This document shows, one piece after another, positions 27,581 to 40,767 of a stretch of DNA of 64,000 nt. The stretch is from Ascidiella aspersa. Its lineage: Eukaryota. How positions within the stretch are numbered: position 1 is the first letter of the stretch; each line of letters begins with the position of its first letter. Location of the stretch: contig OZ004610.1 of the NCBI GenBank assembly GCA_963924565.1, positions 16,492,001 through 16,556,000 of the forward strand, given 5' to 3'. A program made the position numbers and the translations under genes. The notes below the pieces were generated by a model, which was given only the letters and a program-made list of their open reading frames with translations, was not told the DNA's origin and did no database searches.

Positions 27581-30500
27581 TCACGTGGAGTCAACTTTCT
27601 TACGCATCTGCTCCTTTTGTCTATTAAGCGTCCTGCAAAGCGATTCAATTTAAATTTTATCGTTAAAGCTCATTTATTGCTTTTCGTTTTCTTTTTAAAA
27701 TAGTAGCTTTGTAACAAAGCAAATAACAAGATAAAAAAATAATCTTGAAAATTCATTTTAAAGCCTTATATTTCGAGAAAATCGATATCATGTCATTTGG
27801 CTTTGAAATTCATTTTTAAGCTACATTCCAAATCGACGAATAGTGTACCTAAAAATATAATTCATTTACAAAAACGTAGCTAAGCACGAAATTTTTACGC
27901 CGAATAAAACATTTATAGGAAGCTATATATTAAACGGAATGTTTGCATATGCCAATTTGGTACAAAAAAACAACCCAGATTAGGTAACTCTACAAAAAAT
28001 TAATTACATAGACTAACCTGTGCTTATCTTTGAGCATGATTGTGGTTCTATTGTTGAACTTGTAGTTATCTAAAATCATCGACCACTGGCCCTTGCCAAA
28101 TCGCTTGATTCCCTTGTTTAGGTTTTCTTCTTCCCAATCCGTCCACGGCTAAGAATACCAAAAACAAAATAATTCGTAATGTGTTCTATATTCATAACCC
28201 ATGGCATTATACAAATTTGTATAACTGTTATGTAACCCTCAGAAGTTGTACAGGCACTTGACTCAAGGAAAGCTTACCAAAATCAGTCGGTCTTTGCCTT
28301 GGTATATCATTTTTTTCTTATTAATTATATATTAATTATCGAAATGTACTCCTGGAATAAAAACATAGGTAACCAATCACCTATTTACATAAAGGTGGGT
28401 GGGGCTAATTAAGCAGTATGTGAAAAGCCTAGATAAGGATGGCGCATGTTTTCAGTAAAATTGCCAAAATCGTGTTTTGAGTTATGAAAAGTTTAACGCA
28501 AGAATGCTTGACTAGCCCAAAATAAGACGGGCAACATTTTGGATTGTTCTAAACTACCTGATAACCAAAAAGTTGTAAATGTATTTCTAAAAATAGGTTG
28601 TAACAGGAGTGTAAAAGTGCCATTTGGCTCACTTTAAAAATAAATTACGCCATACAAGCAATCTGAGGTCATTTTCGAAATCCGCAGCACATCCAAAACT
28701 CCTTTTATTTTAAACAATTGATGCAGACTTGTTTAATCACAGCTTGCTTCACAATATGCGATTTAGTATGATGGTTATTTTCAAACAAATAAAATGAGTA
28801 TTTATAAATATGTGGTACATAAGAACAATTCAATAACCAAATAGGTAAGGGTACAAAATATGTCCGCAGGGTGCTAGGTAACTTACATGCACTAGAAACG
28901 ATTTAGAACGAAAATATTTGAGAAAAATAAGTAGAACTTGTGAAACTCATTAGAAAGTGTGAAAATATTCAAAGTGATAGTTTGGTATAAATTTTATTGA
29001 GGCCAACAAATAAAACAGGACACCTTATTAGATCAGCAGAAACCTTAAGAGATGCCTCTAGTGACGTAATTTTGTGACGTCTTTGCCTACAATCAGAATT
29101 TGCTTACTTCGTGTAAGTTAATTTGTTTCTGGAGCGCAAATTTTTCACATCAATCAGTTATTCTTTCCTTTCTTTTTCGTGTATCTAAACATTTTAGTCA
29201 CCACACGGTTCCGGTGTGGAAATGTCTTTTTATTAAGGGCGAATGTCAGCATGGGCTAGTTTTTTTACATTACCTTGCTTGTAGGAAAATCTTGTATAAC
29301 CCAACTAACGTATAAACTAAGTATCGGTCATGCCTAGTTTAAACCCAGAATTTGCAGGGGTGAAGGGTGAACAGTCAGAAATGGATGATAGCTTGCGAAA
29401 CAAACTAATCATGTTGTGCTGTTATATACAGACGAGTTTTATCATATCATGAGACAAGGGTGAATGAAATGTGGAGATAGATGCTAGGGATGAAAAAACT
29501 AAAAAAGTTTAAGAAGCAATGGGTTAAGTTATATAAATCCTCACATACGGAACGCAACTGTAGAAACTTGCCTTTTTTTTGTGCGTCCGCAACTTCTTGG
29601 CCTGGACTGTATCGAAAATGTCTGACGCTTTCTCTCGCGACACAAAATTGTGTTTCGGGTCAGTTTCCCACGTCATCACTTCTCCAGTGCCATCGTCAAG
29701 CCAAAGACGTCGTTTCCTTTTTACTGAGAAGCAATAACAAAAACAACAAGGTGAATGAATACTTGGGATGGGAAACTTTAAACAGACTGGAGATGAACAA
29801 TTACGTCTTTTTTCAGAGGTTTAATGTTTTTCTATCTGAAAACAATTTTTGCTGCTACTTAATCGATTGGTCAACTTTTAGGCGCTTACCATTGTGCTGA
29901 CCCTCCACCCTTGCGATGCTGTTCCCCCTAGCGGTGTTACGACGCCTCCTCCGGGCAGGCGACATGCTCCCTTCAGGACTTTGCGAGCGAGATTTGGCGG
30001 GCGACAAAAGCTCGCAATCCTCCCCCTCGTCGTTCTTATTTTCAGACAACGGAGCCGCTGTTTCGTCAGTGTCTTTTTGCTGGCGCGTTGATCTTGGAAT
30101 TCCGTGACCGGACGGCACAGCGCTGTTAGCAACGTCACGGTTTGCGCAAGTGGAAGCTCTAGTTGGCGGACTTTTGCCTGGGGCGACTGCAAATCGGGAC
30201 TGCACACGGGGCTTCGGGACCGAACCGGATTGTCCGTTTAAACGCCGTTGGATAGGCGACGAGGTGTCAACGGCCTTCGTTTTACTGGGCGAGGACGAGA
30301 CGGTCCGTTCCAGGATTGTGACGTCGACCTGTTCTCGAAGCGTCTGCTTCGAGGCTACGGAATGCGACTGCGATGCGACGTCGTTGACCGTGGTTTCGTG
30401 TCTTATTCTCAACGGATCTTCGCGCAGGTCGGACCTCGATTTTGCACGCCCACCAGTCGCGTCAACCTCGCTTTGGGATTCCTGGTCAGAATCGATCTCC

Positions 30501-33500
30501 GAAATAGAAATCTAAAGATACGAAAAAACAAAGAAAGGCGTGAAAAATTTGGTTTAACATTCAAGTGTTTAATAAATTAAAATATCATATATTAGGTTAA
30601 TTTATCGCCTATGGTCAATAAGGCACTAAAATACTATATTATCGTGATATCGAGATAAAAAACAGAAATTATATAGTACACAAGTTTGTAGGGTTAAACT
30701 GACCATTTCTTCTGTTTCAGCCGATTCTGCTTCATTGGCGGACTCTTCACTTGATGCACCTCCTTCATCTGAAAATTAATATTTCCGTATTGGGATATAA
30801 TTTATGAAGAAAGACTATATTTAAAAAAAATAAAATTCCGAAGTTACATAAATTCTAGAGAATAATTATTTTAATTTTAATGCAAAAAAACAAATTTATG
30901 CAAATAGGCGTACTTACTAATAGTGTTACGTTTAAAATATAGAAACATGCTAGTCTTCGTTGTTTTTTTAACATAATACTTTCACATTTTTTTACAGTCA
31001 CATTAACTATTATACAAATGGTTGCACAATGCACATGCTGGTCAAACAAAACACTTTACTTTGGAAACTACTTATAACTAACTGACAAGATGTGTGCGCG
31101 CTCTACATAGGACGTAAAATGTTTACAAATGTTGTAATAATTCTTTCTACATCACATTTGATAAGCTTTCACAATAACCAAAATACACGGTAATTTACTC
31201 TTGCCTGCTGCCTGAGCTTGTTCAAGTAGGCCTAAAAGCAAATCCCGCACTATTACTGGCTCACGGCTCCCTTCATCACAATTCACTTGCTTTTTTAGTG
31301 AAATTAGCTTGCTTTTAAACTCGTCAACCGTGGCAGATGATGACGATTTGTTGTGACATTCTTCACGTAAGCCACCTTTATCAACATTCTCCTATTTAAT
31401 TCGGGTTGCTTAAAGCTGCCCTCTCAACTATACGCTCGAATGGGTCAGTTAAAGCGATCTTTACCTTGCAGCGAAGTTACTTCAACTTATCTTAATTAGC
31501 ATTAAACTGTTCTTTTATATATACCTCACAATCTTACATTCTACAAAACGCCAAATTGCGTAGTTAATTACGTCAAAAAGTAATTTTTAGAAAAAAAAAC
31601 TTTACCTGATGCTAATTGCGGTGGGCCCAGATCAGATGTAGTGGATGTAGACGACAAAGAACTGTAGTAAAAAGAATAAATTTTAATAAAGTTTCAAATG
31701 AATGTTTATTACGAATTTCAATTAAAGTTTACCTCTTGCGACGAAGACGGATGGTGGGAGTTCCTTTAAAATATTAAAAACGATTAAAATGTAAAACAAA
31801 AAAATTCATACTTAAAAACACTTCAAAAATGTGTAAATGCAGAAGCAAAAAATGAATTTTCTCATTTTTTTTTGTTTCTTCGACTACATATATATTTTTT
31901 TTTTCAAGACACGAGTAAAGCAAAACCATTATTTACACTTGGCAACATGTTATAATTATATGGTAAAACTAAGAAGTATGCACGAACTTTCTTTTCTTTG
32001 CTTTCCTTCATCCCGCACAAAGTGTTGATATGCAATCTTATGTGCAGTACTAAGTATCAGTTCCCCGTCTTCTGCTATGCGAACTATTTTCTGATTGCCC
32101 ATGTTACGCCATCTAACAAAAAAGCAAATAATCCACTTCAGTTACGATATCAAATATATCATCTTAGTTTGTCACAAAGTCAGGATTTTGCCAGGGTTTA
32201 CCTGTCCTTGAGGTGCACTGATGTTCTGTAGGCCGGAAATGTGTATTTGTTTAGAATTTGCTTCCACTTTCCAAGGCCCAGAAGAACCACGCCGCGTATG
32301 ATGCGCACATCTGAGTGGATCGTAAAGGCCTGGAATAACATGAATGTATCATATCATTCATTAGGACTTTAGATACCATGAAAAAAAACACATTATAGAA
32401 AATATATATATATATTTTTTTTGTGTTAGCTTGAATATCTACCTAACGGGTCGAAATCCCAACATACTTTGATTAAGCTTTAAAAAACACACGGATGTCG
32501 TACAACAAACCTTTCCGAGAAAAATTGATATTGATTTACGCTAAAGCCTACTGTCTTCTTACATTGTGTTTAACCACGCAAAATTTAGGTGAAGTTCCCA
32601 AAATATTGCGTTTATTGCAGCAGTATGAACAGTAGTGAGCACTTTTTTTTAAAGGAGATTTTTTTACGTTTAACGCACTTTGGAACCGGGACTACGTATT
32701 TGCTTGAATATCACACTATCATGCAAGTTTAAACAAAACTAAAGTTTTGCGTTTGTCAGTAATATAAAGTCGTTTGTTACTTAAAACAGGTGTGACACGC
32801 TTAGCCAAGTGTAGTGTGCTATAGTCGAATATCTAGTCGTATTATTCCAAAAACAACAAACAACATTGTAATTTGGTTACATATTAAGTTGTCACAATCC
32901 TTTTTAAACAGTCGGCTGTAACATGCGGCTGTCGATTTAGACGCCGTATTACTTTTATTAAAGGGAAGGATTTAGTTAAACCATTCCAGATACAATTAAC
33001 GTCAGGACTATCATCCCCTTAACTGTTTCACTATGTAGGGTACATTTTCTGCTATGATCGCAAAATGAAAAAAAAAACACCACATGGTGTGAAATTTATT
33101 TTTACCGAACGTTTGATGCAAGGTAGTACAGCGTTTTGGCCTAAAAAAACTGTTATGCCATATGAAAATATATAGCACTTTTTATTCCTCTGACGAAGAT
33201 GTTACTCTATCGGTAACATCACTTTTTGGTTAAATGCCAATTTTCCCAATCATATTTTGGGACTTGTGTCAACGTAATATATACTAGAGATAAAGAACAC
33301 ACAGTATAATGATTGGTTTCATTTTGTATAACCACGCAAAACTTCGATAGATAAGTTACCGCGCTTATTGCAGTTATAATCGATTTACAACGCCGGAGGA
33401 ACGCCCATAGTCCTTTACTGGATTATACTGGTAAATACTTTATATCGAACCTGGGCAAGGCCGGGTATTTCGTCTAGTTCTAGTACATCATATAAGGGAC

Positions 33501-36500
33501 GCTTACCATTTTCCTTTTTCCATACAAAGGTCGTTGTTCTTTGACAGATTTTTGAAGATTTCTGATATTAAAAAAATGCAAATTATATTAGGCTTGTAAC
33601 TTAAGATTGACTGTTGAGATGAAATAAAGACGGTAAAATTTGGCTTTAACATATATATTGAAAAATTTTTGTTATTACTTGATTTGAAATACTATTGATT
33701 TGAAATACTATTGATTTGAAATAACATTTGGTCTACAGTGTTTTACATAAGAATTAATAAGTAAAATGAGTTGTTATATCAAAATAAACCAAATGGTAAA
33801 ATGTGGAAAAGTAAAATTGTTTGCAGTTATTGTTATCTGTGTCGGTGTTGGTTAGCAAAACATAAAAGATCAGTTAACCAGTTAGAAAAACGGAGATAGG
33901 TGAACAACGGAAGACAATTCTGGCACAGTAATAGCACAAAAAACATGCTTACTATTTTGGCCAGAAGAATTATCCATGAATTAATAACAAATTAAATCAG
34001 CAAATTGTGTTTTTTTCAGCAACATAGTCTAGCAAAGCTAGTAATTCAGGTCAGACACTTATATATGTTAAAAGAATATAGATATTACGCCAGTGAAGGA
34101 ATTATCAGTTTATCTGAATAAACAGCATAACAGTATAAACATTAGGCAAAAGCATTAAAAAATAATATATAAATACTTCAATTTTTTTTTTTGCCTAATA
34201 GTTGTACTTTTACAACATCTATGGAAAGTGTGTAACCTGAATCACTAGCTTTGCTAAAACTATTCTGCTGTTACTGATCAGGAATTGAGGTCGACATATT
34301 TATCGTGGAAGGGTCAAGGTGATTTCCAATATTACACATTCAGTGCAGACAAGTATTTTTCTTATTTAACAAAAGCAACTATTTCCTTATACAAACCCAA
34401 TTTTAATAGGCAACATTGGGCCATGCATGGATTATCTTACTGTGTTTTAAAAATCCCCTTCTTAGATGGACGGCTTTTGTCTTCCACAATGAGAACACTT
34501 TCGGTATCAGCAGAAGATTCTGGCGATCTCTGTATGTCTGTGTTTTGCAATTGTGTGTTTTAGATGTTGAAATAAATATCATAATAGAAAAGTAGAACAA
34601 ATAGCAATCATGATTTCTATATCCATGATTGTGCATAAACAAGATGTATCCTTTCTGGCTCCTTTTTGCATGTTTGTTTACTCATTAAAATAAATTATCA
34701 CACACAAGTAGAAAGGTTAGAAATTCAATATTAAGGTTAGAAATATTGTATATTTAGTGATATAGTTTTACCTTGGTGTTGTTTGTTTTCTTGACATATT
34801 TTTATAATTGCTAAAAAATTCATATTTCACTAAATAAACCTGGTTAGCAGTAACTGGTATTTGTGGCCTCCTAAATAGCATCTCACTAAAACGAATAGGG
34901 GCATGTGCATCTTGGTTAGTCTGTAATATGTATTTTAACCCAAGTGTTTGATGCAAAGTAATTAATGTAATGTGTATATGTTACTCTGTTGACAGTAGTG
35001 TTTAAATATTTTTTAATTAGTATTTCCTGACATTTTTTGGTATTCCTTCTCTATAACATGTATAATTTAAACAGATTGACAAGACTTCTTATTCTTTATA
35101 AATTACAATTAAAGAGAACTGATTTTAACAGCTCCTTGAATGTAGCAGATAATTTGTTTGTACAAGTAGTGGTAAGACCCATTGTGTACTGTACAGAGGG
35201 AGGAAATGGAAATAAGGCTTTTTGCAGGCAAGCAGAAGAGTCAGTTAATTAAAATGCCATCAAACATGATAAAAGCCTGTTTTTAAATACTTTAAAACTG
35301 TATTGAATAACAATGTGATAAAGGCCATATTATGGTTTATAATAAAAAACAAGAAAAAAATAAATCCAAAGAATCTTAAAAAGAAGAGTTAAAAGTGCTT
35401 TTTTAGTTTGTTTTTTAGTACCTTGCAGAATGAGGTTGGTCAAACAACACTGACGGCCGAAACTATTTTTTACAACCAAGTTCAATGTTAACAAAAAATA
35501 AAACTCTCATTTAGTTAACGAAAATAAAAGTCAGTTTACCAGGATAATATCACTGAATATTCTGAATTAGCCAATTTTGGGGAATATACAGCAGAAAGAC
35601 ATGCTACCAAGATATGACTTATGTATTAATATTAAACAAACATGAAATTAAAACTACCAAATTAAAAAAAAACAAAAAAAACAAGATATGTCCCGAAAAT
35701 AAATTTTCGGCCCATATAATAACCATTAATGATATCTATAATTTTATTGTGTGAAATTTGTTCAGTTTTTGCTTCCTAATACAGACAATAGCAAGCATAT
35801 TCTGTCATATTTTGGGGTAAACTAAAACCAGTCAAAGAAGGTAGAACACACTATGGATATGGCTTTTCGTATTAACACAATTAATTACCAAATAATTTGC
35901 CTAAAATACAAAATATTAAAAACTATGCAGCCCAGCAGTTAAATTCTGCACCATGTAATCATGACCCCCAACCATAGTGGTTTCAAACCTACTAAAAAAA
36001 GATTATGCCAATTTTAAGAAATCTTACTGTATTACTATAACAATAAATTCCATTGAAACAAATCACATGAACTCTGCAACAAGTCTTAATTTAGTTGTGC
36101 TCTGTAAGTCTGTACACAAACAACGGTAACACACAACAAGTCTACAATATCTAAAGAATAATAATCTACAAATGCAGAGTATTACAACAACGGCATAATA
36201 GAACCAAATACACAACAATAACTGTGACAGAATAAGACCTAGTAAGATCAAGAAAAAGACCCAAACCTGTTTAAATAAGTCCAAAATACGTACATAATAG
36301 ACAAATTAAAGTTAAACTGTAGGGATAGAGTATGTGAAGCTTGGGGGATACCTGTCAGGCATCTGATGTTTTGCTGTCAACGTTGAGGTACCCTAGTTTG
36401 AATGGCACCATTGGGGCACCTCTGTTTTGGCACTATATTGTTTGCCCCTGCCGTTAGGGAATTGCTGGGGTTTCGGTTAATATTATAGGGGGAGTTATTA

Positions 36501-39500
36501 ATAAAGTTAGGGGTGGGGTTTAGTAAAAAGTTATATAGGCTTTGTTCTGGCCATTTACGCTTATTCTGACAGGTTTAAGCCTTTCTCTGAAGTTCTGACA
36601 GGTTTAAGCCTTTTCTCTTTATAGGGTATTTTTATTATTTTGGTTGTTGATGTTGTTCTCATTTGGGTCTTATGGCTGGATTTCACAAACAACTGAATTA
36701 ATAGGCTTAGAAATATTTAGATTCAAAATAATCCAAATATTTCTTGGCAAGCACCACCAATATAAACGCACCCAATGGTGGTTGAGAACCACTGTACTAG
36801 CAGATCAAAGTCTCAATTAAATTAGTAGTTTCATTTCATTGTTTTTTTATAAGGTGTGAGTAAATACGAAAATTCAACAATGCTTACTTTTGGCTGCCAA
36901 TTTCTCTTGACGAACTTTTTCCATGAAAATTCTGTTGAACTCTTCTTTGAACTAAACAAGGAGGATCAAAAGAAAAGAATAGTTTTACAAATATGTAAAA
37001 CACACATGTGTTTTTTTGTCTAATGTTAAATATATAGGTGACCATATCCTACCAAAAAATATCCAAGCTTGGATTTATGAAGCCATTTTTGTGCAAACCA
37101 AGTGTTTTAGGGTTGATCCTGTTTGTGTGTTTGTAAACAACACTTTTTACATAGAAACAATTTAAACATTAGTGGTTCTATTTTACAGACTTAGGGTTGT
37201 TATGTAGGTTAGTGTGTATTAGTTGCTTAAAGGTTCAAACAAGGCTAATTTTTTTATTTTGCTTTAATTTGTTTGTCTGTTGTAATGTGAATTGCCTAAT
37301 AAAATAAGGCCTAATAAATTAAGATTGCGGCGGGCCTTGCTTTATTTACCGTTTTTTTATAGAGAAAATTTTGAGGCTCTTTGGTGCTTGTATTTTCTGC
37401 AAATGGCTCTTCCATTGAATACATTTGCCCACCCCTGACATAGACCAATAATTTCAATCGATGTATGGCGAAAATTGCCAATAATTTTAATGTTTTGCGG
37501 CTGAAACACTTTATGCACAATCAGCGCACAATACTACTTATACTAACAGAGGAGGATTCTATACGATGACAAAGAGAAAGATACTATATAATATTAAGTA
37601 CAAGTATATATGCATATTGGAAGACACCTCATATTCAAGCAACATACTACCAAAAGCTTACATCTTTCGCAATGTTATTGCAAAGCACTGGCCTCTAGTG
37701 TGCATTGCTGTACCAGCAGATTTCAGTTTTTTGGACTTCCTGGAAGCACCGGACAATCACATTTCATAATTATACATTATAATAGTGCGTCATAAAGCTT
37801 TTTCGCAATCTATTACAAAGCAATCAAATTTTGTCATTTCTACTCAAATATCCCACTTCATATTTGGAAGCTAGAAAGCCAAGAAAATTACCTTTCATTT
37901 AAGCTAAGTTGCAGAAAAATCGAAGTAGAGTATTTTTCGGTATAACTGATCAAAGTTTTGTCATGCATGACTGATCACAAACAGTCATGTGTGAAACTAG
38001 CCACTGGAGGCCTGTAGTGATACAAAAACAAACAACAATATATCTTTTTAGAATCTGCTTACTTTGAAGAACTGATATGCATTGGATTTTTTTAGTTACC
38101 ACTTAAAACACCTTCATAATGGGTCAAACAAAATTTGCAGTTAAATTTTATGCATGAGCGATCACGAAAAAGCCTAAAAAGGACCAATTTTCATTCGCTG
38201 ATATCTCAAAAAGTACTAGACCAATTTCGGTAAAATTGGTATCACTTTTCATAGAATTGCACAGAGATTCTACATATAAAATTTTAAAAAAATCTATGAC
38301 ATATGGTGCCACCACTGTACCAGTAGCAATAGAATGACCCATTGTTGTGAAGCAAATAGAATCTATCACCCTGAAACAAGTTGTCTTTAAAAGTATTATT
38401 TTAAAAAGTATTATACCAAACAGTGGTTACAGGTAATTGTCAGCAAAATATCCGATTTACAACTAAGAAGTATTGTAATCTTTATAATTCGATTTTAAAA
38501 AACATTAAAAAGTAAATAATTTTTAATGATATTTACCCGAGACATGACAGGTACTCTCAGTATTTTCAAATATTCTTTCACCAATGCTTTTGTTGCATTA
38601 AAAATACGCAAACTGTGTGACATAGTAATCTCTCCGACTTGAGATGAACTTGCAACAATTTGCGTAAATTCTATCAGTTTAGGCTACAAAAAAATACACT
38701 TTAAATTTTAACATTTTAAAGTTAATCTAAATATTGTTTTGTTTTTAAAAAAAACTTACAAGAAATGTTTCATCCAAATACAGTTTCATTGTTTCATCAG
38801 TTGTAAGGTCTGTTATCATTTCAATAACTTCACACAACTTTTCTGACACTTTTCTTACTTGTGCAATTTGTATTATTTTTCCTTGTCATAAATAAAACAA
38901 AATGTTTGTTGAAATAACATGTAATGCTGGCCAATTAACAAAATATTATATATATACTTGATCTATAAGTGCCAAATAAACACTGGTAGTAAAAAATAAG
39001 AAAGGCTTAATAATAAATTACTTATTCTAAAAAGCAAACTTATCAAACTGCATGGGATGCAAACTCAAACAGTTCTGGAAATTATTCAAGCGAGCAGTCT
39101 GCTATGCATGTTGGCTAGATGTCACACTTAACAAACACAAAGGCTTAAATTATATATTTGCTAATCACATTGTACATAATAAATTTTTCGCGTATTTCAT
39201 TTTATCAATGAATTTTAATTGTGTCGTTAAGGGTTTGAAAAACCAAAAATAACTTTTTTTTACACAACATACAGCCATGTGAGTTGGTTGAAAGGCGCAC
39301 AGCTTCATGAAATGATCAGCAATCAAGGTCTTAATTTTTAACTTATTTTGTAAAATATGTATTTCACAAGTAAAAGGCATCTTTAGTATTTCCATACAAA
39401 CAACTAGTAAAAAATATTTAAATGTCAAAAAATTAAAACTTTTATTGTTGACAAAATGTATTATGTTGGATGGCAAGATTCTGTTTCGAAAAAAAAACTG

Positions 39501-39884
39501 AGCTTAGTTAAGTAATATTAATAAGTTAGAGACATGTGGCATGATTTGAAGCTTTAATTATATCTACGCTTGCAGCTAAGGATATTTACAATTTTAGTAT
39601 TTTTAAAGAAATCTAACCATCTGTTGTTAGCTGATGGACACATTCCTTGGTGCAATAAAGCAGTCCTCTAATGACAGAAGTTGGATCATTGGCATATGTA
39701 AGGGTTTTCTTAAGACCTAAGAAAGTAAAAGTTGATTCAACTTATTCTACGGCAAAGATTGTAAATAATTTTATATTTACTTACATGGTTTTTGATCAAA
39801 ACATTGAAGTTCCTCATTATATTCAAAGTCTATTGTCCATTGGTCAATTGAGCAACTTGATTGCTCTACGCCAGAGTCACTCAT
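27581..39884 (-). CDS. TERF: Telomeric repeat-binding factor (TRF1/TRF2-like): divergent TRFH-like N-terminus and two telobox Myb domains
   Basis: Phase-consistent exons: 39884-39785 (MSDSGVEQSSCSIDQWTIDFEYNEELQCF, W-x-x-DF like TRFH helix 1), 39716-39618, 38881-38760, 38683-38537, 36951-36888, [unresolved small exons ~35600-34441], 33561-33507 (..LYGKRKM), 32329-32202 (Myb1), 32112-31988 (RWRNM..), 31763-31733, 31661-31606, (31485-31465), ~31375-31199, 30768-30704, 30511-29890, 29723-29572, 28148-28018 (Myb2), 27632-27581 (stop). Confidence 0.8.
28018..28148 (-). CDS. TERF: TRF exon encoding the C-terminal telobox Myb domain
   Basis: PWTDWEEENLNKGIKRFGKGQWSMILDNYKFNNRTTIMLKDKH(R|TL), compared with human TRF1 [46 protein letters not shown]. 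Flanked by ttcttag| and |gttagt. Confidence 0.92.
32202..32329 (-). CDS. TERF: TRF exon encoding the internal (second) telobox Myb domain
   Basis: AFTIHSDVRIIRGVVLLGLGKWKQILNKYTFPAYRTSVHLKD(R|WRNM). Preceded by the KRKM exon. Acceptor ttattccag|, donor |gtaaac. The next exon (from 32112) completes KDRWRNM. Confidence 0.85.
33449..33478 (+). mobile_element. Helitron-like 3' terminus
   Basis: GC-rich imperfect hairpin cctgggcaaggccggg followed ~10 nt later by CTAG|T, the canonical Helitron 3' end. 5' end not located. Confidence 0.45.
36345..36640. repeat. Dispersed repeat with telomere-like motifs, related to 61080-61450
   Basis: gttaggggtggggtttag and a duplicated ttctgacaggtttaagcc unit. 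The reverse strand shares tgcctgaca / ccaaaacag blocks with 61190-61350, which contains aaccctaaccc. Confidence 0.4.
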
Positions 39885-39988
39885 AGTTGATGAAATAGTT
39901 CCAAACTGGCACTTTTCTTAAATTAAAAACAGAATTTTAGTTAAATATCTAGCAAATGCTGAAAAATAACTGTTATAGTTAGCAAGTT

Positions 39989-40257
39989 GGCGCTCTTTCA
40001 CTATTGAACGTAAAAATTAACAAAAATTTTTTTTTCTTCAAATGCCGCTTACCACAACGCATATTGTTTTGGTTAGGGTGCGGGTTAGAGTTTGGTTGAG
40101 GGTGGGTCAAGTTATTATTAATAATAAACAAAATATTACTTGACCCACCCTTACCCAAACGCTAACCCGCACCCTAACCCAAACAATATGCGTTGTGGTA
40201 TGCGGTATTATTTTTTTTTTTTGCATAACCTTTCACGTACAATAGTGAAAGAGCGCC
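39989..40257. mobile_element. Palindromic MITE (Merlin-like: GG termini, 8-bp TSD) with TTAGGG-like arms
   Basis: Long inverted arms ggcgctctttcactattg...accacaacgcatattgtt..ggttagggtgcgggttag..gggtgggtcaagt / acttgacccaccc..ctaacccgcaccctaacc..aacaatatgcgttgtggt...caatagtgaaagagcgcc. Direct repeat agcaagtt at 39981-39988 and 40258-40265. Superfamily assignment is inference. Confidence 0.8.
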
Positions 40258-40767
40258 AGCAAGTTTCATTTCAAAATATTTGTATGCATGCCTATACGAT
40301 TTTATTTAATTTGTTAAGTGTAAATCATGCATTGCATACTCCCGAGATTTTTCACGTGTAAAGATAGAAGAGCTAACTCTATTATAAAATTTGAGTACAT
40401 TACAAATTTACAAGTGAATTGTTTTGCAGTTTTTTAACTTCGAATTGCAAAGCTTCATGCTTCGCTGGTGAGTTAAGTCAAAGGCTATGTGATTTCTATA
40501 TAAACAATTGAGTCTTTTGTAACATTCTAGAATAAAACACATACTTAAAGCTGCTTGAGTTTTATTTTTTATATTTTTAATAAATTCAATACACACAAGT
40601 AACAATAATGTGCTGCTGTTTGGAAGTAAATAGTTTAATCAAAACCAGTCGACCGTGACAACCTCTTTCCTTGGTTGACGTATTTTATATACAAGTAATC
40701 CAAAAGAAAGAATGCTGAAGTTTGTGTGGCGCGAGATTCAAAACGACTATACAAGTACATAGGAAAC

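Follow-up and report, generated by a model that had tools for sequence, protein, structure and literature searches.

A TRF-like locus with two telobox Myb domains in Ascidiella aspersa and its relatives among ascidians

Results

Exon structure of the locus

We analyzed a stretch of 64,000 nucleotides from the ascidian Ascidiella aspersa (GCA_963924565.1, contig OZ004610.1, here C4, positions 16492001-16556000), which contains no N and is termed the window. Between positions 39884 and 27581 its minus strand carries what is most likely one TRF-like gene, whose exons encode two Myb domains of the telobox type, termed Myb1 and Myb2. An initial annotation of the window had placed two teloboxes on the same strand, and the residues it quoted were found at 32329-32202 (Myb1) and 28148-28018 (Myb2). 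Homology searches used single exons or database homologs as queries, the assembly searched comprising 308.6 Mb in 75 contigs; the joining of exons served phase checks only. The splice sites of the minus-strand exons were read, showing AG at all acceptors and GT at all donors but one, which is GC. The features of the locus are as follows.

39785-39884, minus strand: exon 1, with ATG at 39884, 33 codons plus 1 nt and a GTAAGT donor; phase checked
39618-39716, minus strand: exon 2 (candidate), 99 nt, entered and left in phase 1, with a polypyrimidine-AG acceptor and a GTTAGA donor; frame continuous with exon 1
38760-38881, minus strand: exon 3 (candidate), 122 nt, helical, with an AG acceptor, a GTAAGT donor and a continuous frame; weak in-order match to a hidden Markov model (HMM)
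38537-38683, minus strand: exon 4 (candidate), last helices of the N-terminal domain, with a good acceptor and a GTAAAT donor
33562-38536, minus strand: linker region, exons uncalled; expected to hold acidic/Ser-rich linker exons between the N-terminal domain and Myb1
33507-33561, minus strand: basic exon, 55 nt, ending ...GKRKM; N-terminal arm of Myb1, with an AG acceptor and a GTAAGC donor, ending in phase 0
32202-32329, minus strand: Myb1 exon, AFT...GLGKWKQIL...RTSVHLKD, helices 1-3 up to LKD, with an FPAYR loop insertion
31959-32112, minus strand: exon after Myb1, (R)WRNM plus a conserved extension (...EDGELIL...AYQHF), open to the TAA at 31959-31961
30704-30768, minus strand: acidic exon, E/S-rich, entered in phase 1, with a polypyrimidine-AG acceptor and a GTCAGT donor
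29890-30511, minus strand: hinge exon, 622 nt, 207 codons, S/R/P/K-rich, with good splice sites
29572-29723, minus strand: iDDR-like exon, KRKRRLW..GTGEVMTWETDP, then a basic run to HKKK; tblastn E 2e-8 to Phallusia P0003; phase checked
28018-28148, minus strand: Myb2 exon, PWT...GKGQWSMIL...FNNRTTIMLKDKH, C-terminal TRF-type telobox with LKDKH
27581-27632, minus strand: last coding exon, (R)TLNRQKEQMRKKVDST, starting (R)TLNRQ..., with a TGA stop at 27581

The N-terminal domain begins with a helix encoded by exon 1, which includes the W..DF..N..L.CF pattern, and the residues LRVPVMSR of exon 4 align with the family motif PF(L/I).K. The 3' end of exon 4 is uncertain, as the residues added by read-through are likewise family-like, and exon 2 by itself did not match the HMM of ascidian N-terminal domains above noise. 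Together, exons 1-4 account for 156 residues. Homology (tblastn, HMM) gave no exon call in 33562-38536; in homologs, 100-190 unconserved residues lie between the N-terminal domain and Myb1. The exon that starts at 32112 probably uses a donor at 31988 or 31970, its 3' end being provisional. The hinge exon is the longest open frame at the locus, and the hinges of homologs are predicted to be disordered, with a predicted local distance difference test score (pLDDT) below 50. The product of the iDDR-like exon reads KRKRRLW..GEVMTWETDP...HKKK, its C-terminal end being ...THKKK. The intron that follows, ahead of the Myb2 exon, has the apparent GC donor (AAG/GCAAGT, 29566-29571, minus strand), and no in-phase GT donor lies nearby.

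An in-frame chain of exons had initially been drawn from Myb1 to Myb2. Its three exons at 30768-29572 are solid, whereas the part from Myb1 to the acidic exon can be built in 17 in-frame ways; with these combinations of donors and small exons open between 32112 and 30768, the chain was dropped as proof. Because its phase at entry is 1, the acidic exon requires an upstream coding exon.

Sequence, structure and phylogeny of the two Myb domains

Both Myb exons begin at a phase-0 intron one residue ahead of the first aromatic position, as initially described. The deviations from the core tryptophans, i.e., the first Trp to Phe in Myb1 and the third Trp to His in Myb2, could likewise be read from the exons, and the LKD-K/R recognition helix assigned to both domains corresponds to KDRWR in Myb1 and KDKHR in Myb2. 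At their 3' ends both exons stop in phase 2, two codons apart (LKD-R/W versus LKDKH-R/T, the slash marking the intron).

The Myb2 exon matched Pfam Myb_DNA-binding with an E-value of 1e-6 and 29.1 bits (cut-off 24.4). The Myb1 exon alone reached 9.5e-4 and 19.7 bits, the WRNM end of its helix 3 being located in the next exon. Ascidian proteins as tblastn queries matched the Myb1 exon (E 1e-12, P0026), the Myb2 exon (E 2e-17) and the extension encoded by the exon after Myb1 (P0026). Chance open reading frames are ruled out by the E-values of the Myb exons. Identity between the window exons and their orthologs amounts to 45-64% for Myb1 and 44-73% for Myb2 (tblastn). The protein collection contains no exact counterpart of the window exons, so the orthologs come from other ascidian species. 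Each of the two exons is single-copy in the genome. The Myb2 exon also matched weakly (E 0.002, 42% identity) at C1:13691840-13691938, in an open frame of 74 codons.

Among solved structures, the best matches of the family profile were the Mybs of TRF1 and TRF2 (E 3e-24 to 4e-18); for the Myb1 part of the profile they were plant Myb-extension domains of the TBP1 type (2juh, E 3e-6; 2aje, 2qhb and 2ckx). An AlphaFold2 model was computed for the Clavelina protein P0002 (562 residues) from a shallow alignment of 8 rows, giving a predicted template modelling score (pTM) of 0.34. Myb1 was modelled with a pLDDT near 90, its three helices being followed by a beta-hairpin and one more helix; for Myb2 the pLDDT was near 93. 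The modelled Myb2 superposes on TRF1- and TRF2-DNA complexes with a root-mean-square deviation (rmsd) of 0.5-1.0 A and Z 10.5-11.3 (0.5-0.8 A for TRF1-DNA).

Helix 3 of Myb1 is canonical (V-H-L-K-D-R-W-R). The helix-3 motif K-D-R/K-W/Y-R (PMC8653790) is present in Myb1 as KDRWR; Myb2 of the window, KDKHR, has His at the aromatic position, which is occupied by F in Clavelina, Y in Phallusia and Styela and W in Ciona. Nine of nine Myb1 sequences share a basic residue in the arm, three residues ahead of the first aromatic one, as well as K, D and R in helix 3, and Myb2 has these arm and helix-3 contact residues too, with the exception of the His.

A tree was built from 39 Myb segments, nine of them ascidian Myb1. 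These nine formed a single clade (support 98/94) that included the window Myb1 beside P0026. Because Myb1 is monophyletic in this tree, it was gained once, before the sampled ascidians diverged; as an old monophyletic lineage, it also rules out a recent tandem exon duplication. The Myb2 sequences formed no resolved group among the metazoan TRF Mybs. Placement of Myb2 in this company and ascidian relatives agree with the initial assignment to a chordate TRF-like gene, and with relatives being ascidian, a vertebrate TERF1 locus is ruled out. The exon duplication initially proposed fared less clearly: the position of the 5' intron is the same in both Myb exons, but that of the 3' intron is off by two codons, and the tree neither shows nor rejects it, as forcing Myb1 and Myb2 together was not rejected by the approximately unbiased test (p-AU 0.12). 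A derivation of Myb1 from Myb2 by duplication is thus possible on these sequence data.

Conservation of the double-Myb architecture in ascidians

The Myb2 exon was searched with phmmer against 1.8 billion representatives. Relatives were retrieved with E-values of 5e-22 to 7e-18, and most of the top full-length matches contained two matched stretches. Four named double-Myb orthologs, all labelled 'uncharacterized' in the database, were identified.

Clavelina lepadiformis: LOC143450384, XP_076807020/19
Phallusia mammillata: CAB3261678
Ciona intestinalis: LOC100177249, XP_002123931, 858 residues
Styela clava: LOC120341031, XP_039265388, formerly 'dentin sialophosphoprotein-like'

These four genera span the three ascidian orders, Ciona and Phallusia being placed in the same one. 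The presence of two teloboxes in one polypeptide, as first suggested for the window, is conserved in all four and in four transcript-sized sequences, and Pfam detected two Myb stretches in six of six ascidian homologs tested. The common order is a helical N-terminal domain, an acidic linker, Myb1 with its extension, a disordered hinge, an iDDR-like motif, a basic run and Myb2. In the alignment, Myb1 plus extension, the iDDR-like motif and Myb2 are conserved; the linkers are unconserved yet in frame, and the length of the hinge varies among orthologs from about 130 to about 750 residues. Family members share, in Myb1, F at the first Trp position, a loop FP.(Y/F)R that is longer by one residue, HLKDRWRT(L/M) and a conserved tail, and ahead of Myb2 the motif RR(L/I)WD.EGE...W(D/E). 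All four elements of this signature (Myb1 traits, extension, iDDR-like motif and Myb2) are present at the locus in family order. Judging from the orthologs, they are presumably united in one transcript here as well, and the double-Myb architecture as such can, on the sequences compared, be regarded as real and conserved among the sampled ascidians.

Three of the homologs lie on contigs that barely exceed their reading frames (P0026, 1022 residues on 3569 nt; P0029, 1204 residues on 3857 nt; P0018, 304 residues on 1502 nt). Tunicate genes are intron-rich, and frames free of introns on contigs of this size suggest that P0026, P0029 and P0018 are transcripts. P0018 and P0025 (344 residues) carry Myb1 near the N-terminus and Myb2 at the C-terminus without an N-terminal helical domain; they represent either partial transcripts or a lineage that lost the TRFH-like domain. 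Two near-identical Mybs were observed in P0017 (642 residues, from an invertebrate genomic contig) and in P0009 of the fish Albula goreensis (481 residues). By sequence, these doublings appear recent, internal and independent of ascidian Myb1, and that of P0009 may be an assembly or annotation artefact. A word-based protein search with the alignment profile as query returned P0026 as its sole match, low-complexity words dominating, and the same kind of search with Ciona residues 362-462 gave no match.

The N-terminal domain is probably a divergent TRFH domain

Tblastn with ascidian proteins did not find the N-terminal exons of the locus. With the HMM of ascidian N-terminal domains, weak matches were obtained for exon 1 (E 0.017, HMM positions 1-28) and exon 4 (E 0.06, HMM positions 146-174). 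A genome scan with Pfam TRF (PF08558) was negative, as was the scan's own control. This model also misses six of ten non-tunicate Myb matches, including the TRFs of amphioxus, hemichordate and sea urchin. As a positive control, the Pfam-negative N-termini of these and other non-tunicate sequences were aligned to vertebrate TRFH with hhalign, giving 99.7% probability. The ascidian N-termini matched a merged TRFH profile with 72% probability (E 3.5e-5) over 75 columns that cover the last helices with PFL.K, and upon inclusion of a paralog from contig C6 (see below) with 91% probability (E 1.2e-6) over 181 columns. Scores were 39-49 in comparison to at most 18 for reversed and column-shuffled controls. 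The N-terminus had been described as short and TRFH-like: short it is, and its likeness to TRFH is weak. We conclude that the N-terminal domain of about 156 residues is probably a shortened and very divergent TRFH domain, the sequence comparisons leaning toward membership in this family.

The iDDR-like motif and telomere repeats

A motif RRLW..G.GE..TWE/D lies 35-45 residues ahead of Myb2 and is kept in all full-length homologs. It resembles the iDDR core of TRF2 orthologs, ETWSDEDELF, a likeness at the level of the motif only. Looser forms occur in the TRFs of amphioxus, hemichordate and sea urchin at a similar distance from the Myb, and the iDDR trait has served as a ground for calling invertebrate TRFs TRF2-like (Myler et al., PMC8653790).

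The pattern (TTAGGG)5 occurs genome-wide as 9040 overlapping 30-mer matches (5718 forward, 3322 reverse), and a control pattern gave 0. A long perfect (TTAGGG)n array was observed on contig C1, starting at 40958825.

A second TRF-like gene on contig C6

A further TRF-like gene, with a single open frame of 450 codons, was found at C6:4077411-4078760 (minus strand) as a weak genome match to Myb1. Its N-terminal region matched the ascidian N-terminal HMM (E 1e-5) and, over 186 columns, the TRFH-linked N-terminal profile of non-tunicate sequences (P 5e-4). The Myb of this gene is of the Myb1 type, its loop being FPAW and its helix 3 degenerate (LKDRCK), and it is placed on the Myb1 side of the tree (90/81) on a long branch. 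Neither Myb2 nor iDDR was found within 9 kb downstream, and a word-based protein search with the open frame returned no homologs. The arrangement TRFH-linker-Myb equals the first half of the double-Myb gene, which suggests that the latter arose by fusion of two TRF copies or that the C6 gene goes back to an old retroposition of a short isoform.

Apart from these genes, a nested palindromic element was noted at 39988-40258 in the window, some 100 bp ahead of the start codon. Its outer arms of 28 nt are 93% complementary and its inner arms of 75 nt are 91% complementary, with a spacer of 19 nt; it looks like a miniature inverted-repeat transposable element (MITE) or a hairpin.

Discussion

A candidate double-Myb TRF and its possible mode of action

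We consider it probable, with only moderate confidence, that the locus at 39884-27581 (minus strand) is one gene encoding an ascidian TRF, the shelterin subunit that binds double-stranded telomere repeats, and that this TRF is particular to the lineage in possessing two DNA-binding modules. The protein would consist of a TRFH-like domain, an unconserved acidic linker, Myb1 with its extension, a disordered hinge of ~300 residues, an iDDR-like motif of the TRF2 type and Myb2. Both Mybs are expected to read the TTAGGG duplex through a Lys/Arg arm and a K-D-R/K-x-R helix, and the flexible hinge would allow one chain to hold two repeat sites, either in cis or by bridging. Two sites per chain would lessen the need for dimerisation through TRFH, which would fit the decay of this domain; the N-terminal domain may still dimerise, resulting in four Mybs per dimer. 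The iDDR-like motif could restrain MRN as it does in TRF2.

Several observations weigh against this interpretation. An exon from 32112 that is left unspliced meets the TAA at 31959, its candidate donors are weak, and many in-frame combinations arise by chance. Models of 364 residues that begin within the hinge and have Myb2 as their sole Myb are on record for Ciona from two sources (UniProt F6YGY7 and XP_078487311; P0024/P0154). In the N-terminal domain, Pfam TRF (PF08558) was negative in six ascidian homologs, and its model, based on eight sequences, retrieved nothing but generic four-helix bundles in Foldseek and VIA. Myb2 of the window carries His at a position that is W, Y or F in TRFs. 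The Rap1-binding motif (Pfam TERF2_RBM, PF16772) was found in no ascidian homolog, although it was detected in the control TRF2 ortholog P0116, and exon-wise Pfam scans for POT1, Rap1_C and TINF2_N, uninformative as they are, gave no match.

Alternatively, the locus could give rise to two products, one composed of the N-terminal domain and Myb1 and ending at the TAA, the other composed of hinge, iDDR-like motif and Myb2 and depending on an internal promoter or on trans-splicing of a spliced leader. In that case it would amount to a tandem pair of TRF-like genes with one Myb each, or to a fused gene with short isoforms as its main products. Besides the in-frame stop at 31959, which is followed ~250 nt downstream by AATAAA and ATTAAA, and the weak donors of this exon, such a scenario can invoke the C-terminal-only models of Ciona, which make internal promoters or trans-spliced downstream products conceivable, as well as a separate, slightly different entry of 111 residues in Clavelina named 'TRF1-like' (P0151); P0024/P0154 and P0151 could be products of internal promoters, partial duplicates or annotation splits. 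The single-exon C6 paralog, which comprises just the half made up of N-terminal domain and Myb1-type Myb, could also be a retrocopy of a short mRNA. However, the reading frame is open across both Mybs and the unconserved linker in the four named ascidians and in four or more other sequences, in spite of very variable linker lengths, and in all of them the conserved extension after Myb1 runs on into further coding sequence. Only translation as one protein would maintain an open frame across an unconserved linker, and entry in phase 1 bars the acidic exon from being the first coding exon. We regard two separate products as unlikely and consider it likely that a full-length double-Myb protein is made; additional short isoforms are possible.

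A double-Myb protein need not be part of shelterin, and it could instead act as a chromatin or transcription factor at interstitial TTAGGG-like sites, comparable to Tbf1/Teb1 or plant TRB/TRFL, while another factor would cap the telomeres. The detection of TRFH is not robust, a Rap1-binding motif was not detected and no partner emerged from the exon-wise scans, and a survey from 2021 that used the criterion of TRFH plus Myb reported no tunicate TRF (PMC8653790). Nonetheless, Myb2 groups with metazoan TRF Mybs, with TRF1 and TRF2 as its best solved relatives, the TRF2-type iDDR-like motif sits at its usual distance from Myb2, the hhalign link of the N-terminus to TRFH (72-91%) came with clean controls, and neither Myb exon has a close genomic paralog, so that we judge a function outside shelterin to be quite improbable. 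Very unlikely, in our view, is a division of labour in which Myb2 alone binds DNA and Myb1 with its extension serves protein interaction or regulation, as the Myb of Rap1 does, or dimerisation, as in the TEBP proteins of C. elegans, some of whose Myb modules are reported to dimerise (PMC11032478). All Myb1 copies do have F in place of the first Trp, lack the acidic pair in helix 1 and bear the lineage-specific hairpin-plus-helix extension. Yet their contact pattern (basic arm, K-D-R-W/F-R) is invariant in nine sequences and more canonical than that of Myb2, and F at the first Trp position is also found in ordinary TRF Mybs (P0017, P0093 and P0146).

Turning back to the single double-Myb TRF that we favour, its origin may have involved the head-to-tail fusion of a complete, C6-like TRF copy with a second copy devoid of TRFH, followed by monomeric binding through two teloboxes, which would dispense with TRFH dimerisation and permit the decay of TRFH. 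We consider this full scenario doubtful. If it were true, the ascidian complex would be the first among metazoan shelterins to rest on a monomeric double-strand binder with two Mybs, and the split of TRF1 and TRF2 would be later than the divergence of tunicates and vertebrates.

Relation to known telomere-binding proteins

Tunicates and vertebrates are sister groups. The presence of a single candidate in each genome that is TRF2-like by its iDDR-like motif, long hinge and TRF-type Myb supports a duplication into TRF1 and TRF2 in the vertebrate stem. For Ciona, a single telobox is on record (Poulet et al., 2012), and tunicate TRF orthologs were not found by Myler et al. 2021 (PMC8653790), who left the timing of the TRF1/TRF2 duplication open. 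Double-Myb TRFs are not reported in the literature searched for tunicates or other invertebrate deuterostomes, and searches combining shelterin and tunicates add nothing. The double-Myb gene may thus be the tunicate TRF that the 2021 survey missed; it offers a concrete TRF candidate for tunicates and a plausible answer to the gap stated there. The orthologous sequences are already public but uncharacterized. The two-Myb architecture would represent an unreported way of bringing two Mybs to TTAGGG, both being placed in one chain while TRFH is weakened, and hence a natural system for asking how far shelterin architecture depends on TRFH dimerisation. These predictions are directly testable in Ciona, where CRISPR and electroporation are routine.

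Several Myb-like modules per chain are also found in the metazoan double-stranded telomere binders TEBP-1 and TEBP-2 of C. elegans (DTN-1/2; PMC11032478, PMC7819708). These belong to a nematode-specific family acting on TTAGGC repeats and are not known to have a TRF-type C-terminal Myb or an iDDR. The plant Myb-extension domains of TBP1, TRP and NgTRF1 share with ascidian Myb1 an extra helix after the Myb. Their superposition is poor, though (TM about 0.57, rmsd 8-9 A), and the ascidian extension opens with a beta-hairpin.

Two telobox-type Mybs that read TTAGGG-like repeats from one polypeptide are known from Tay1 of Yarrowia and Teb1 of S. pombe. There the Mybs are adjacent and N-terminal, and neither an iDDR nor a C-terminal TRF Myb is known. 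In the ascidian proteins, compared here with these by description, about 300 or more residues separate the Mybs, and Myb2 belongs to the metazoan TRF Mybs. The different spacing and the position of Myb2 among metazoan TRFs argue for analogy and an independent origin.

A close resemblance is to the single invertebrate TRF and vertebrate TRF2 (TERF2; PMC8653790), with which the ascidian protein has in common a C-terminal telobox Myb, a long disordered hinge, an iDDR-like motif, a TTAGGG genome and a helical N-terminal domain with weak TRFH profile similarity that includes the terminal PFL.K helix. It differs by the additional internal telobox with its extension and by an N-terminal domain of about 156-175 instead of about 200 residues that is negative for Pfam TRF. 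In comparison to TRF2, the TERF2 Rap1-binding motif was not detected in the ascidian homologs, and Myb2 of the window reads KDKHR rather than KD(R/K)(W/Y)R. With the four named ascidian orthologs, finally, the locus shares the same domain order and motifs, the length of the hinge being variable.

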